From Macrostomum lignano (taxonomy: Eukaryota), in assembly GCA_002269645.1 (NCBI GenBank), contig NIVC01000438.1, positions 473,379 through 537,378 on the forward strand: a stretch of DNA of 64,000 nt. Direction: 5' to 3'. The notes beneath the pieces are model-generated. The model did not search any database. It saw only the letters and a program-made list of their open reading frames with translations, and was not told the DNA's origin. The position numbers and the translations under genes are program-made. Positions 17,576 to 63,822 of the stretch are shown one piece after another (within the stretch, counting starts at the first letter, position 1; the number at the start of each line of letters is the position of its first letter).

Positions 17576-20500
17576 TCACATGGCATTCCTTTTGCTGGGG
17601 CTTTGGCTCAGGTCGCGTCTCGAGCAGCCGCTGACAATGCTGTCTCGGTTACAGCTGTACGAGTCGCTGGCAGCGGACTCGGTAATTGACAGGCAGATCT
17701 GCCGGTCATATTTTCGATCTGATCGTTCGTAATTGCTGAGCATCGAATCGATGATGCCAAACTTAGTGCTCATTCGGTTCACTGTACTGTCCAGATCTGA
17801 AGTGGAAAAATATGCTGTTGCAATTGTAGTCAAACAAAATGTGCGCAATATTAGAATTAAAAACTTCGTGTTGTGCTTGGCTTCATATATGAGAAAATGT
17901 GCCTGCCATTATTTAATAGCAGCTAATTCTAATTTCACTAACAACTTGGTGTCATATATATACCTTACTCAAAGCTAAAATTTCTGCTTTACCGGGCAAT
18001 GCAACAAAACTTGAAAACAGTTTACTAGATTGCCTACGGAATCGAGAATATGATTTTGCCACCGGAAAGGCTTTTAAGCCTTTACCACACAGTGGTCTTG
18101 TAACAGTCGTTGGATCGGAGATGATCTTGACACGTCCTGAGCTAAAGGTAGTATATTAAACTATCAAACCTAAAATATGATTTTCTATGAAAGACTATTC
18201 CTAAAGAACATAAAAAAATATTTTTATTTGACGTCAATACGTTCTCCATAGCGTCGTTACTACGGTAAAACTTTTGCCAAGTTAATTACTTTAAGCATGC
18301 CAAAAAGTAATTTTTACCTTTCACCCACCGCTTATCAGCTTTTTTTGTTTAAGGCTAAAACTGTTCCTCTATATTATCGTCACATGCAATTTAATTTACT
18401 GTTCTACGAGCGTACTGTCTTCACAACGTTTGGGTGAAAATGGTACGAGAATACAAAAAAGTGGTGCACAAAAAGAAAGCACAATGAACCTGCACGTGCT
18501 GGTGAAGTTAAAATCAGAAATAGCAAAAGCAAACCTTCATGATCCTTGTAGCTCTGTCTTGAGTCCTTAGAAATGAACGTGTCGCGCAGTCGCTGCATCA
18601 CAAACTGGACAATTTGAAATTCGCCCGCGCCACCGACGCCGCCCTGCGCGGTGTCCTTGGCCCCCTCGTAGCTGTCGTTAAGAATAACCACGAACAGATT
18701 GACAACGATGAATATCAAAAAGGAGACGTACAGAGAGAAGGCCAGCTTTGGAAGCATCCCATGGCTGCTGACCGTGGCCATGTCAAACTTTCCTAACATG
18801 GCTGAGAACATCGTCGACATGGTGCCTAAAGGTGAGTTGAACTCCATCTGCACTGCACCAAGCAGCTGGTTCATTAAGAAGCAAAAGGCAAAGAAGATCA
18901 CACAGAAGAAGACGGCAAACGAGCTCAAGTGGCTTAGAGACGATTTCAGAGTGCCAAACAAATGACCCAAACTGGAGCTGAATTTGATTAGCCCAAGCAG
19001 CGACAGCTGCAGAAGGAAGCTCGAAAATCCGAGTGAATAGAAGAAGAACTCATTGAGCAGTAGCAGCTGGCGCAGCTGCGGCCGGCCTCCGTTGATTGCC
19101 GCCTCTAGTGCGCCGCCAGTGCCGGCCGTGCGGAGCCCGTAGAACGCACAGGCGATTACCATGAAGATGATCACGCCGATGTCGAGCCAGTTCTCGAAGT
19201 TAGTCCAGAACTTGCGGCCATCGCAAAGCTGAACCAGAAGAAATACGATGCGCAGCAGAGTCAGAATGCCGGCCAGAATTTCTGATACTAGCGCAAACAC
19301 GCCAACAGCGCCTACATAGCGGTAAAGGCGAGTGCTTAGCAACTGCGAGCTTGCTTGAGCACCGCCGAACGACTGCAGCTCTGTTGCCATAGCAACTGAT
19401 GTAAACAAATTCACATCCGAGTAGAACAGATCAAGCTCAATAACCACAAGTTTAGTGTGCGAATCCAACCAGTTTAAACGCTTCAGTTCGGTGAGAAAAG
19501 CTTGACTGGAGCCCAGACCGTCGGGCAGCAGGGCTACAAAGCCGCCGCCGCGATAATCGGCCAGCAGCCCGTTGTACGGCGCTCCGTCCGGCCGGTTCAT
19601 GAAGGCCTGCGCTAGCAGCGACGCCGACAAGTTGCACGGAGTTTCGTCTGCCCAGCCAGGACTGAAGCAGCCAGTTTCGTCGTCCGGAGGCCTGATGAAG
19701 TCTGACTGACTCTGGTTGCGACGCCGTCGGAGCTGGCGCACGGACACTCTGCTTAGACGGTAGCCGCACCCATCGGAGACGAGGAACGTGGCCGAGCTGG
19801 GATACACAGCAGGTAGGATGCTCGAGTTTATTATGCTGTACAGCTGGGAAGCAGTTCCAGTCACAGACGCAAAATCGTCGTAGTTCAAGTGCGTCTTGAC
19901 ACTTTTGTGCAATCGGAACATTCCCGGGTCGATATTGCCGTAGCAAATGCAGTATTGCAGCAGGAGCAAGAGCACAGTGAGGACCAGCTTCAGTGTGGCG
20001 TTGATTGCAGCCTTGCGAACCGGGTTTTGCCGATCTTTCGCCTCCAGCTCGTATAGGAAGGCTACGCCCTCTGAAAAGAGTATTTTAGAACCACATATTG
20101 CAGCATTTTTTTCAATATAGATGTGGGCTAGCATTTAAAATACGCATATAACCCACTCTGTATTAACCAAGATATGATATACATTGATCCTTATAAGTTG
20201 CGCCTACCTCTCTGCAATGTTTCATTGAAGTAGCGAACTCTTATCAGGGTGAAGTTTTCAACGTCGTAGTCCTTGCGAAACAGTACGATCAGGATGAATC
20301 CAATTAACGCCACCTGTAGAGTGAAAGTCGATAGCAAATTATCACTTCGGTGTTTAAATGTAATGTTTACGAGGCTGTTTCTGTCTGCAGGACCATCATA
20401 GATGATTGAGTACGAAAGTTTGATGCGTATGCTATGAACATGATGTTAACATGATGTAATATAATTTTTTAAACTAATTAAACTCGCACCTTTAGCGGCT

Positions 20501-63400: not shown

Positions 63401-63822
63401 GAAGTGTTAGTAGCAAAATCGAGCCCCTAGTAAATGAATACTCACCGGACTTATGCCGCTCATAAGGAACACAGTGGAGCCAGCGGTAAAGTAGGACTTC
63501 GTAGTTGAGTAGCCGGCCTTGAAGCTGGTCACTCGGCCCTGCGGACTCGTTGCACGCGACATGTTGCCGTAGACCAGAAATCCGGTCACCGTATAGTTGA
63601 ATGGAAAGTAGATACTGACTAGCTTGTCAGTCAGATAGGCCCCCTGGATGAAAGGCCCTGTCGCTTTTGATGTGAACATCAACGAGTTCTGGAACTGGTT
63701 GGCAGCGGCAGCCTTCGGTATCGCCCAGGCTGACGGCATGTACCGACCCAGGCCGGCCGGGGACTGGCTGAGCTTGGCGAGCTGGTTGGAACCTGCCGGA
63801 TGAGGCATAGCGATGGTTACTC
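17576..63822 (-). CDS. Giant polycystin-1-like (PKD1/PKD1L/REJ family) receptor-channel gene; 75 exons traced, about 7,100 aa, 5' end outside the window
   Basis: Manual exon chaining from 63822 to the TGA at 17576-17578. Every junction has a donor and an AG acceptor with matching phase and no internal stop. The REJ-GAIN/GPS-TM1-PLAT-TM2-5-TOP-channel order is diagnostic of the family. No ATG or signal peptide is in the window: the first exon seen starts at a phase-1 acceptor. Confidence 0.9.
21474..21883 (-). CDS. PKD1-like gene: PLAT/LH2 domain (exons 21883-21713, 21628-21474)
   Basis: [52 protein letters not shown], located directly after TM1. Confidence 0.8.
22339..25400 (-). CDS. PKD1-like gene: REJ module, GAIN/GPS and TM1
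   Basis: [51 protein letters not shown] (REJ); [21 protein letters not shown] (GPS region); TM1 [27 protein letters not shown]. Confidence 0.88.
25400..29790 (-). CDS. PKD1-like gene: PKD repeats and about three Cys-bearing beta-sandwich-like repeats (exons 29790-29222, 28754-27669, 27595-25197)
   Basis: PKD-type motifs: [72 protein letters not shown]. Upstream repeats have a C..C V..D..NN..C pattern. Confidence 0.8.
29878..30684 (-). CDS. PKD1-like gene: fibrinogen-related domain (30684-30115) followed by an EB/EGF-like Cys module (30021-29878)
   Basis: [38 protein letters not shown] is the FReD pattern; [23 protein letters not shown] is the EB pattern. Confidence 0.75.
30769..37261 (-). 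CDS. PKD1-like gene: two short repeat units (CLEC-PAN-discoidin(s)) lacking the kringle cassette
   Basis: C-type-lectin folds at 37261-36315 and 32736-32189, PAN-like exons 35915-35670 and 32047-31790, and discoidin domains (EWLQVQF..KFELFGC; [15 protein letters not shown]). Confidence 0.75.
33196..33333 (+). repeat. (CT)n microsatellite, intronic
   Basis: About 69 units with one interruption. Confidence 0.98.
34340..34626 (-). mobile_element. tRNA-derived CORE-SINE (family B)
   Basis: Minus-strand head GGGTTGCAGCCTGCTCGGTAGAG..GGTTCGATTC. The plus-strand segment CCCATTTTACAGCTGGGGGAACTGAAGCAATGCAG..TCTTGCTCAAGGACAC matches the MIR/Ther CORE consensus as I recall it. Second copy at 53688-53981. 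Confidence 0.85.
37629..47140 (-). CDS. PKD1-like gene: long super-repeat copy 2 (CLEC-PAN-[discoidin N-part/kringle/FTP-like/FAMeT-like/discoidin C-part]-FTP-like-discoidin-short discoidin)
   Basis: Kringle [25 protein letters not shown]; FTP-like [20 protein letters not shown]; discoidin [22 protein letters not shown]. Exon sizes and phases parallel copy 1. Confidence 0.78.
42400..42740 (-). mobile_element. tRNA-derived SINE family A, intronic copy
   Basis: Aligns along its length with 154-531 (GAGGCATTACTGCCCATTCCG, ATCGTTAGGCATGTACACTTCACTG, TTGGAATCGAACC). Confidence 0.88.
46638..46928 (+). repeat. (TCTG)n microsatellite, about 290 bp, intronic
   Basis: About 72 near-perfect units with one substitution near the end. 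Confidence 0.98.
47141..59613 (-). CDS. PKD1-like gene: long super-repeat copy 1 (same module order as copy 2)
   Basis: CLEC 59613-58229; PAN-like 57796-57542; discoidin N-part 57470-57348; kringle 57238-56926; FTP-like 56829-55982; FAMeT-like 55788-54417; discoidin C-part 54345-53313; FTP-like 52851-51840; discoidin 51243-49051; short discoidin 47540 onward. Confidence 0.75.
47613..48786. mobile_element. Non-autonomous hAT-type DNA transposon, 1174 bp, intronic
   Basis: Perfect 11-bp TIR CAGTGTTGGGC / GCCCAACACTG; perfect 8-bp TSD CCCCTTGG (47605-47612 and 48787-48794); subterminal CCGGAAGTTAC-like repeats at both ends; no transposase ORF. An 8-bp TSD is characteristic of hAT (also P and Merlin). 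Confidence 0.9.
49711..50690 (+). mobile_element. Possible internally deleted Crypton (tyrosine-recombinase) remnant with a 95-nt hairpin
   Basis: Hairpin at 49711-49805. The ORF segment [27 protein letters not shown] and, in another frame, [16 protein letters not shown] resemble the C-terminal ends of DUF3504/Crypton proteins as I recall them. GGCCATTATTCCAC at about 49830 is inverted at about 50674. Confidence 0.35.
51524..51683. mobile_element. 160-bp MITE, hAT-like
   Basis: 8-bp TSD ATTCAGTT (51516-51523 and 51684-51691); imperfect CAGG(A)GCG termini. Confidence 0.7.
53688..53981 (-). mobile_element. tRNA-derived CORE-SINE (family B), second copy
   Basis: Head GGGTTTGTAGTCTAGTGGTGAG..GGGTTCGATTCC, CORE segment, and an (ATT)n-like tail at about 53630-53690. 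Aligns with 34340-34626. Confidence 0.85.
59100..59270 (+). repeat. Purine-rich (GA/GGAGA) low-complexity tract, intronic
   Basis: Almost exclusively G and A on the plus strand. Confidence 0.85.
61511..61880 (+). mobile_element. tRNA-derived SINE family A, full length, with 14-bp target-site duplication
   Basis: Head GGGCCGTAGCCCAGCGGTAGCG..GGCTCGATTCC; tail TAATAAAATAATAAAAAA; TSD ACAGGTAAGTAGCA at 61497-61510 and 61881-61894. Confidence 0.92.
61986..63822 (-). CDS. PKD1-like gene: most 5' exons in the window (discoidin plus short discoidin; 63822-63446, 63090-62937, 62839-62625, 62115-61986)
   Basis: [38 protein letters not shown]. Exon phases match the end of each super-repeat, implying a further repeat unit upstream. 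Confidence 0.72.
62420..62555 (+). repeat. Dispersed copy of the GCCTTGATATCT..GCAAT..CCC minisatellite family
   Basis: GAGCCTTGATATCTGAGCAATCCCC matches the units at 2982-3128. Confidence 0.6.

Follow-up and report, generated by a model that had tools for sequence, protein, structure and literature searches.

The described proteins closest to the one considered here are the receptors of the PKD1 (polycystin-1/REJ) family, which range in size from 4,303 amino acids (aa) in the human protein to 1,450-3,716 aa in SpREJ1-10 and draw their modules from the C-type lectin, SUEL, EGF, WSC, LRR and PKD types (PMC1934368). Human PKD1 and PKD1L2/PKD1L3 each carry one C-type lectin domain in the ectodomain (PMC1934368), and the SpREJ proteins have variable ectodomains in which carbohydrate-recognition modules (C-type lectin, SUEL, EGF) precede REJ, so that an arm that binds ligand is linked with an ion-channel event (PMC1934368, PMC2120838). 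The REJ protein of sea urchin sperm binds an egg-jelly glycoprotein and triggers the ion-channel-regulated acrosome reaction (PMC2120838), and the N-terminus of PC-1, including the C-type lectin domain, activates PC-1/PC-2 (PMC7728438). The pkd1L genes of planarians are expressed in ciliated sensory neurons and give chemosensory or mechanosensory phenotypes upon RNA interference (RNAi) (PMC11448475), and Platynereis PKD1-1 and PKD2-1 are necessary for a hydrodynamic startle response (PMC6294549). Ectodomains of the polycystin-1 type are thought to control the TRPP channel, and their ligands are mostly unknown, even for the human disease protein. The locus described here lies on contig NIVC01000438.1 of the flatworm Macrostomum lignano (assembly GCA_002269645.1), within a stretch of 64,000 nucleotides (nt) (positions 473,379 to 537,378 of the forward strand) that was analysed as a whole and is referred to as the window. 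On the reading that we consider probable, which includes the mechanism proposed below, the region is most of one gene for an 11-transmembrane receptor of the PKD1 family with a lectin-type extracellular arm.

The window has about 44% G+C and zero Ns, and long open frames are concentrated in its 17.5-64 kb portion, on the minus strand. The gene was modelled with an ab initio dynamic-programming exon/intron parser, which scored coding potential by a three-periodic Markov model trained on the large exons and used splice matrices that were re-estimated after one pass; the parser converged at 73 exons, one of which, a 9-nt first exon, was dropped as spurious. The resulting model (17576-63792, minus strand, as are all features of the gene given below) represents the in-window part of what is probably a single gene, with both ends read from the sequence, and consists of 72 GT-AG exons with 20,999 coding bases and 6,998 codons. 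Its only stop is the terminal TGA (17578-17576), and there are no internal stops, as compared with the approximately 398 that are expected by chance in 6,998 random codons. Most donors read GTGAGT or GTAAGT, with CAG or TAG at the acceptors; intron length has a median of 193 nt, 34 of the 71 being below 150 nt, and splice phases are consistent along the whole model. Splicing also restores domains that are split in the genome, namely REJ (exons 59-61), the second of three immunoglobulin (Ig)-like repeats (exons 57/58) and PLAT (exons 66-68). The reading frame, the domain content and the topology are shown by the sequence, and the domain order is conserved in other genomes. An initial annotation, made from the sequence alone, had proposed one continuous frame over 75 exons; the uninterrupted frame and the TGA that ends it are recovered, with 72 exons in the independent model, and four junction coordinates given at that stage (30021, 29790, 28754 and 27595) are exactly the acceptor-side exon starts of that model. 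Its broader proposal of a polycystin-1-like receptor of more than 7,000 aa with a multi-lectin-fold ectodomain agrees with the present results in the family, in the lectin-type array and in the approximate length (about 7,000 aa in the window), with some of the module types unsupported or weak.

The assignment to the PKD1 family comes from the membrane-proximal and membrane-spanning portions of the protein. In the largest minus-strand frames, Pfam detects PKD and REJ (25139-27634), REJ (24407-25081), Polycystin_dom and PKD_channel (18407-20134), and Fibrinogen_C and EB (29816-30712). Exon 59 (25197-27595; 799 aa) encodes three PKD repeats (2.3e-22, in three stretches) followed by the N-terminal half of REJ, and a fourth PKD-like repeat (aa 4345-4466) is recognized upstream by profile. 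The REJ domain (PF02010) is reassembled in order across exons 59-61 despite the two introns that split it, with profile positions 4-208 (E 4e-15) followed by positions 210-449 (E 1.5e-37), the latter encoded by exons 60-61 (24425-25110). Hydropathy places 11 membrane segments between aa 5966 and 6877. Exons 66-70 (20208-21883), which are colinear with the M. lignano relatives P0003 and P0004, encode a PLAT domain (aa ~6012-6120; 1.9e-7) in the loop between the first transmembrane segment (TM1, aa 5966-5984) and TM2 (aa 6172-6190), and then TM2-TM5. The last large exon, exon 71 (18535-20070), contains TM6, the polycystin (TOP) domain and a six-TM channel-like region, as indicated by both Polycystin_dom (6e-20) and PKD_channel (2e-17), and among PDB sequences it matches PKD2L1 (1e-30), PKD2 (1e-26), PKD1L3 (3e-18) and PC1 (1.5e-4). 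The final exon (17576-17796) supplies a cytoplasmic tail and the stop codon. Thus, the PKD repeats, REJ, PLAT and channel named in the initial annotation are all matched by Pfam. No gene for a PKD2-type partner occurs within the window.

Immediately N-terminal to the PKD repeats is a segment that resembles a stalk. It begins with a fibrinogen-like domain on a single exon (30115-30684; aa 3681-3870), which matches Fibrinogen_C (PF00147; 6.8e-10) well above the cut-off (38.4-39.6 bits versus 22), as had been proposed, over profile positions 40-190 of 221. This is followed by a six-cysteine EB/EGF-like module on one 144-nt exon with phase 1-1 boundaries (29878-30021), for which the proposed EB identity (PF01683; 5e-5) is borderline, the Pfam score falling just below the cut-off (21.8-23.7 versus 24.3 bits); an M. 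lignano relative carries the name "EGF-like domain-containing". The next intron (29791-29877; 87 nt, GTACGT donor and TTTCAG acceptor) holds an in-frame TGA (29815-29813) that would otherwise close the upstream frame, which continues across the intron. Exons 57 and 58 (27669-29790) then encode three repeats of about 135 aa (aa 3934-4061, 4074-4208 and 4221-4344) together with the fourth PKD-like repeat. The second of these repeats is divided by a 467-nt intron (29221-28755), and an iterated profile finds all three in every relative. AlphaFold modelling, which covered single-exon translations only, gives an all-beta structure for exon 58, and Foldseek matches it to tandem Ig-like domains.

Similar sequences can be found in M. 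lignano itself and elsewhere. An exhaustive HMMER search with exon 59 yields 333 relatives; protein searches by word index, whether queried with exon 59 or with aa 3681-4634 around the junctions, return almost nothing, which, given the 333 relatives, is taken as a limit of the prefilter rather than absence. M. lignano has a set of PKD1-like fragments and paralogues (A0A1I8GY.., A0A1I8FTT6, A0A1I8GED8; PAA69298.1; A0A1I8JIH8/A0A1I8JK18). The closest named proteins are fragments from this species that show 59-63% identity in REJ-GAIN-PLAT-TM and in the channel, follow the order of model residues 5408-6248 and 6379-6912, and on this evidence are probable orthologue fragments; the next closest is a mollusc "polycystin-1-like protein 2" at 25% identity. 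All M. lignano relatives are fragments or 5′-truncated models of 534-3,185 aa, and the full lectin array is present in none of them, in keeping with the earlier expectation that automated annotation would split such a gene. Nevertheless, the M. lignano paralogues P0019, P0164 and P0048 have fibrinogen, EB, the three repeats, PKD and REJ in one protein, with alignments that cross the exon 55/56/57 and 57/58 junctions, and thereby share the arrangement fibrinogen-EB-three repeats-PKD-REJ-11TM with the model.

The truncation can be followed at one paralogous locus, L001 (NIVC01001334.1:183111-193210), where the gene model PAA69298.1 is cut short at its 5′ side. Upstream of it on the same strand are unannotated open reading frames (ORFs) for discoidin (1928-2452), C-type lectin (3135-3701), fibrinogen-EB-repeat 1 (7732-9456) and further repeats (9351-10096). 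Here fibrinogen-EB-L1 falls within one tblastn match in a single frame, yet this match spans two same-frame ORFs that are split by a stop. The best match of all is P0012 (MEE4247216.1), a single ORF of 863 aa. It shows 39% identity to exon 59 across some 800 aa, among them the metazoan-specific start of REJ, and its initial 51 residues correspond to the end of exon 58, so that it crosses the exon 58/59 junction without an intron. This protein is recorded as "PKD domain-containing protein [Kangiellaceae bacterium]" on a 4.9-kb contig of a metagenome-assembled genome (MAG). Judging from its sequence, the contig is almost certainly flatworm-like animal DNA that has been mis-binned into a bacterial genome. 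Macrostomum annotations thus truncate or fragment the polycystin family, and one homologous exon is stored as a "bacterial" MAG protein, from which it follows that counts of spiralian polycystins and lectins are likely wrong. Outside the flatworms, two predicted and uncharacterised proteins of the annelid Dimorphilus gyrociliatus, CAD5126282.1 (DgyrCDS14438; 6,071 aa) and CAD5126713.1 (DgyrCDS14777; 5,543 aa), are colinear with the model. The former covers the whole channel region and the alignment of the latter stops at model aa 6680; the Dimorphilus alignment also crosses the junction between the discoidin of module D and the fibrinogen domain.

Between REJ and the membrane, exons 62-65 (22339-24344) encode a helical region, a beta-rich GAIN-like region with a degenerate GPS, and TM1. 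Pfam gives no family match for the region preceding TM1, GPS included. However, this stretch aligns with relatives that have a canonical GPS (C-x-C-x-HLTSFG), with W280, W287 and C296 invariant, and the AlphaFold model of the GPS-region exon (predicted local distance difference test score, 74.5) consists of a helix, a beta-rich domain and then TM1. Within the GPS (22339-22600; aa ~5925-5945), the sequence RFVSNLFGS replaces the last two cysteines and HL-T, and the cleavage triad is gone, a loss that predicts the absence of autoproteolysis at this site. The domain is treated here as homologous to the GAIN domain of the canonical relatives but degenerate; the GAIN domain of the initial annotation is retained in this sense, with a degenerate motif and a weak fold match (Foldseek E 0.035). 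The same GPS change is found in all M. lignano and Dimorphilus relatives and not in the aligned mollusc, amphioxus or other relatives, and it may serve as a clade marker. The gene probably belongs to an undescribed spiralian subgroup of the PKD1/REJ family that is distinguished by this degenerate GPS.

The distal part of the ectodomain is an array of lectin-type modules with an intricate internal order. Super-module A (exons 1-19; aa 1-1177; 51840-63792) begins with a discoidin-like domain, a beta-sandwich, a C-type-lectin fold, a cysteine-poor "PAN-like" module and a kringle-like remnant, and continues with two unclassified modules (~155-170 aa), a discoidin-like domain and an unclassified module of ~155 aa, as delineated by Lectin_C (1.2e-8), F5_F8_type_C and local profiles. 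Super-module B (exons 20-36; aa 1178-2379; 39618-51243) is an ancient tandem duplicate of A. In sliding-window phmmer searches and a global alignment, and with profiles, the two align colinearly through 1,087 residues, of which 27% are identical, and their exon boundaries are mostly common; BLASTP of the model against itself shows no off-diagonal matches, and the super-repeat is seen only by phmmer with 120-aa windows. That both copies are colinear with common exon boundaries at such low identity indicates that two old copies have stayed open, and the best explanation for the array, from its sequence, is growth by tandem duplication of a 13-kb super-module of 17-19 exons. A partial super-module C (exons 37-48; aa 2380-3290; 32941-39542), delimited by Pfam, profiles and hhalign, has a discoidin-like domain, a beta-sandwich, a C-type-lectin fold, a cysteine-rich module, two discoidin-like domains and a beta-sandwich. 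Module D (exons 49-54; aa 3291-3680; 30769-32736), with a C-type-lectin fold, a cysteine-rich module and a discoidin-like domain, has the same order and spacing as in the Dimorphilus proteins.

Four C-type-lectin folds were expected and four are found, at aa 283-409, 1460-1577, 2677-2811 and 3292-3433. The copy in A, which is encoded by two exons (58229-59613), matches Lectin_C (PF00059) at 1.2e-8 and 36 bits against a cut-off of 22.6; the others (46295-47262, in part; 36315-37261; 32189-32736) are recognized by iterated local profiles that include annelid homologues, and the D copy also scores E 0.011 with Pfam. Discoidin domains are more numerous. One copy in C (aa 2915-3009) exceeds the F5_F8_type_C (PF00754) cut-off (1.4e-10; 41.8 versus 28.2 bits) and five others fall below it (17.5-25.8 bits). 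An iterated profile including annelid domains identifies eight discoidin-like domains, and matches of the array to annelid discoidin and C-type-lectin domains are strong. Module X is related to discoidin by hhalign (88% probability), and the four "second beta-sandwich" modules are weakly linked to discoidin (54% over 30 columns), so that the earlier figure of about 12 discoidin-like modules is reasonable.

The remaining modules of the array are more difficult to classify. A profile of the A and B copies of the proposed kringle pair matches the kringles of angiostatin, plasminogen and HGF weakly (E 6.5e-4 to 0.02), over only ~27-39 profile positions, and Pfam finds no kringle; at ~45-50 aa, as opposed to the usual ~80 aa with a six-cysteine signature, these modules are kringle remnants at best. 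The proposed four PAN-like, four FTP-like and two FAMeT-like modules are not confirmed. Single modules give no Pfam match to PAN, FTP or FAMeT (Methyltransf_FA) even at E values up to 10, searches of the "FAMeT-like" and "FTP-like" modules against PDB profiles return chance matches only (17-beta-HSD8, ribosomal L13), and hhalign of the PAN-like and FTP-like modules against annelid PAN and FTP alignments gives probabilities of at most 1.3%. What is left for PAN is an analogy of position, after the C-type-lectin fold as in Dimorphilus, and for one pair of modules a motif-level resemblance (AVDG...C...PW.V.L). Throughout the array (29222-63792), 34 of 56 introns are in phase 1, and the boundaries between modules and between super-modules are all phase 1-1. 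Such a pattern is the classic sign of exon shuffling; with it, any cassette or super-module could be skipped in frame, which could diversify the arm.

At the 5′ side, the first exon in the window is open up to 63880, with possible acceptors at 63793 and 63823, the latter of which would make the exon begin at 63822, and an ATG in frame at 63808. As a true start this ATG can be set aside, because no signal peptide follows it and comparison with copy B places it inside a discoidin-like domain. The interval 63792-64000 encodes no signal peptide, and the last ~200 nt of the window contain no plausible first exon, consistent with the proposal of a gene that reaches further 5′. Very probably it runs on past the window, so a length of more than 7,000 aa is plausible.

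Whether these domains belong to one transcript is the question on which alternative readings differ. From the sequence and the relatives described above, a single gene with one transcript for ~7,000 aa seems likely. From module D to the PKD exon, successive introns measure only 84, 93, 87, 467 and 73 nt, the 467-nt intron being the one that splits a domain, and those at super-module boundaries are 75-596 nt, so an ordinary intergenic region would not fit at these boundaries. Residues 1-5965 contain neither a signal peptide nor a membrane segment, and no intron of the model contains a candidate that combines a methionine, a signal peptide and a donor. The four longest introns contain interspersed repeats or microsatellites, not missing exons.

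An alternative that appears unlikely is that the region holds at least two transcription units, one for a secreted multi-lectin protein and another for a shorter polycystin-1-like receptor that starts near the fibrinogen exon through an internal promoter or spliced-leader trans-splicing. Both trans-splicing and operons have been reported for Macrostomum. The paralogue models P0019 and P0163 do begin at the fibrinogen domain, but they lack a start methionine and are evidently truncated, and at L001 lectin ORFs lie upstream of just such a truncated model. If the 87-nt intron were retained, the in-frame TGA after EB would end the upstream protein, and an ATG lies 3 nt past the acceptor at 29790; however, the retained intron adds only 21 residues before the stop, and the peptide that follows the ATG (29788) has no signal sequence, although ~2,000 extracellular residues come after it. 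A membrane-anchored short form produced by the same retention can be rejected, since its hydrophobic run of 11-13 residues is too short for anchoring. In addition, introns at these boundaries are 84-93 nt long, the annelid models are continuous over the same boundary, and no intronic first-exon candidate has been found.

A somewhat less probable possibility is that the gene is single but seldom if ever yields the full 7,000-aa form, because alternative splicing of the phase-1 cassettes gives isoforms with subsets of the lectin modules. The prevalence of phase 1 and its presence at all module and super-module boundaries would allow the frame to survive such skipping, and A and B are redundant copies of one super-module. 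Yet all cassettes are open with good splice sites, as would be expected equally of constitutive and of alternative use, and the Dimorphilus models include all of their repeats. Finally, the idea that only the proximal polycystin part is real and the distal array is a decaying or non-functional duplication, its pseudo-exons open by chance or over-fitting, draws on the many distal modules that are below Pfam cut-offs or without family and on the tendency of a dynamic-programming gene finder always to return some frame-consistent path, but it is very improbable in view of ~11.7 kb of distal coding sequence without a stop, the strong profile matches to annelid domains, and the colinearity of A and B at 27% identity with conserved exon boundaries, which requires long-term selection on both.

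Several observations weigh against the preferred reading of one receptor gene with a lectin-type arm. The model is ab initio, from genomic DNA alone, a few small exons score low as coding (for example, 54291-54251 and 52534-52395), and the start codon and signal peptide probably lie beyond the window. The relatives that support it are mostly computational gene models themselves, and the M. lignano paralogue models that start at the fibrinogen domain, with no methionine and the look of truncation, make a shorter natural form possible. The match to the GAIN fold is weak, in that Foldseek ranks the GAIN domain of BAI3 only 24th (E 0.035, probability 0.99). Several modules of the array are without a recognizable family. 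Moreover, none of the four C-type-lectin folds keeps EPN/QPD...WND; the EPN/QPD position is occupied by TQPP, GQPG, GANQ and GQPV, and WND is present in none. As these Ca2+- and sugar-binding motifs are absent, "lectin" is a label for the fold here and not for an activity.

If the single receptor is nonetheless produced, its ectodomain of ~5,960 aa would have the lectin-type array in its distal part, the fibrinogen-like domain, EB/EGF-like module and stalk of three Ig-like repeats in the middle, and next to the membrane REJ, preceded by four or more PKD repeats and followed by a GAIN-like domain with no cleavage residues left in its GPS. Such a protein would probably reside in a ciliary membrane of a sensory cell or in that of a gamete, where its last six helices would assemble with PKD2-type subunits by analogy with PC1/PC2 and PKD1L3/PKD2L1. 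The long arm would bind glycans or matrix, or be pulled by flow or contact, and the stalk, predicted to remain uncleaved, would relay this binding or pulling to the channel complex and so gate or modulate it; the combination of such a stalk with an arm of ~6,000 aa suggests that transmission is direct. We infer from the sequence and from described relatives that all of this is on one transcript, and likewise infer the ligand, the subunit that serves as partner and the type of cell. Overall, the combination of a lectin-rich modular arm, an uncleaved stalk and a near-PKD2 channel region, in a flatworm genus amenable to RNAi and transgenesis, would make this a natural system for studying how an ectodomain is coupled to its channel. 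A bolder proposal, which we rate as improbable, is that there is a distinct, undescribed spiralian clade of giant PKD1-family receptors with a fibrinogen-EB-three-Ig-like stalk, a non-cleaving GPS and an expandable set of alternatively spliced phase-1 lectin-type cassettes, which together would place a repertoire of arms for recognizing glycans or surfaces on a TRPP channel. Were it true, such a clade would represent a combinatorial chemo- or mechanosensor, or a receptor for gamete or self/non-self recognition.

Other elements occur in the window. Downstream of the polycystin gene and on the same strand is a gene for a DEG/ENaC (amiloride-sensitive sodium channel, PF00858) protein (5266-6891, minus strand), in which two open frames are parted by an in-frame TAG (6147-6145) at the end of a 21-nt GT...AG stretch; this could reflect a micro-intron, read-through or a pseudogene. 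The intergenic region that separates this gene from the polycystin gene has a 105-nt tandem repeat (15280-15538; 2.5 copies, 94% matches), and an ORF at 14649-15104 (plus strand) has a match to a NedA-like galactose-binding domain (PF22633, E 4.7e-6), its adjoining ORFs being without a Pfam match. Introns of the polycystin gene contain two perfect microsatellites, (CT)69 at 33196-33333 and (TCTG)73 at 46638-46928, the second of which creates spurious ORFs of more than 100 aa on both strands. Two families of interspersed repeats (~300 and ~250 nt), with copies that are 84-96% identical, are located in long introns or outside the gene (214-519, 61512-61817, inverted, and 42574-42725; also 34341-34585 and 53692-53939), and no coding capacity was detected in them. 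Plus-strand ORFs and ORFs inside the long introns were considered as genes and rejected, because they have no Pfam matches and coincide with these microsatellites and interspersed repeats.

Comparison with described and database members of the family places the gene more precisely. The model shares with human PKD1 and PKD1L2/PKD1L3 the PKD repeats, REJ, the position of GAIN/GPS, the TM1-PLAT-TM2-5 arrangement, the TOP domain and the six-TM channel-like region, and in this last region it resembles PKD2L1/PKD2 and PKD1L3 more than PC1. Unlike the human proteins, it has no detected LRR, WSC or LDL-A, its GPS is without HL-T/S, and its PKD repeats number only about four, fewer than in polycystin-1, which has 16. 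It has in addition ~3,900 aa of lectin-type modules, the fibrinogen-like domain, EB and the three Ig-like repeats. The SpREJ proteins, for which no discoidin, fibrinogen or kringle is reported, reach at most half its size, and some have one or two TM segments. Among other animals, Haliotis rufescens XP_048238653.1 (6,593 aa) is likewise a giant with a PKD-REJ-11TM core, and its N-terminal 3,700 aa match none of the discoidin, C-type-lectin and Ig-like-repeat profiles. The crinoid Anneissia japonica (XP_033100162.1; 2,014 aa) has four discoidin-profile domains before PKD-REJ, and Nematostella XP_048589509.1 has one; the Haliotis, Anneissia and Nematostella proteins give no match in the C-type-lectin, fibrinogen and Ig-like-repeat searches.

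No polycystin described with discoidin arrays, with a fibrinogen-like domain or with this stalk turned up in literature searches, in agreement with the initial statement that no described polycystin was known to have such a combination. However, the architecture is not unique, as the Dimorphilus database proteins are built on the same plan. They have the same distal order of repeated discoidin and C-type-lectin units, PAN, discoidin, a fibrinogen-like domain, an EGF-like module and three ~135-aa Ig-like repeats, and the same proximal order of PKD repeats, REJ, a degenerate GPS (SNLFGS), TM1, PLAT and channel. They differ in a simpler repeat unit (discoidin-discoidin-C-type lectin) that is without the kringle-like module and the two unclassified modules of the flatworm model, in a clear FTP domain after fibrinogen that the model does not have, in sequence (22-31% identity) and in being 900-1,450 aa shorter. 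The M. lignano gene is an undescribed form within the known PKD1/REJ family, rather than something categorically new, with its nearest counterpart in overall plan among the giant annelid proteins.

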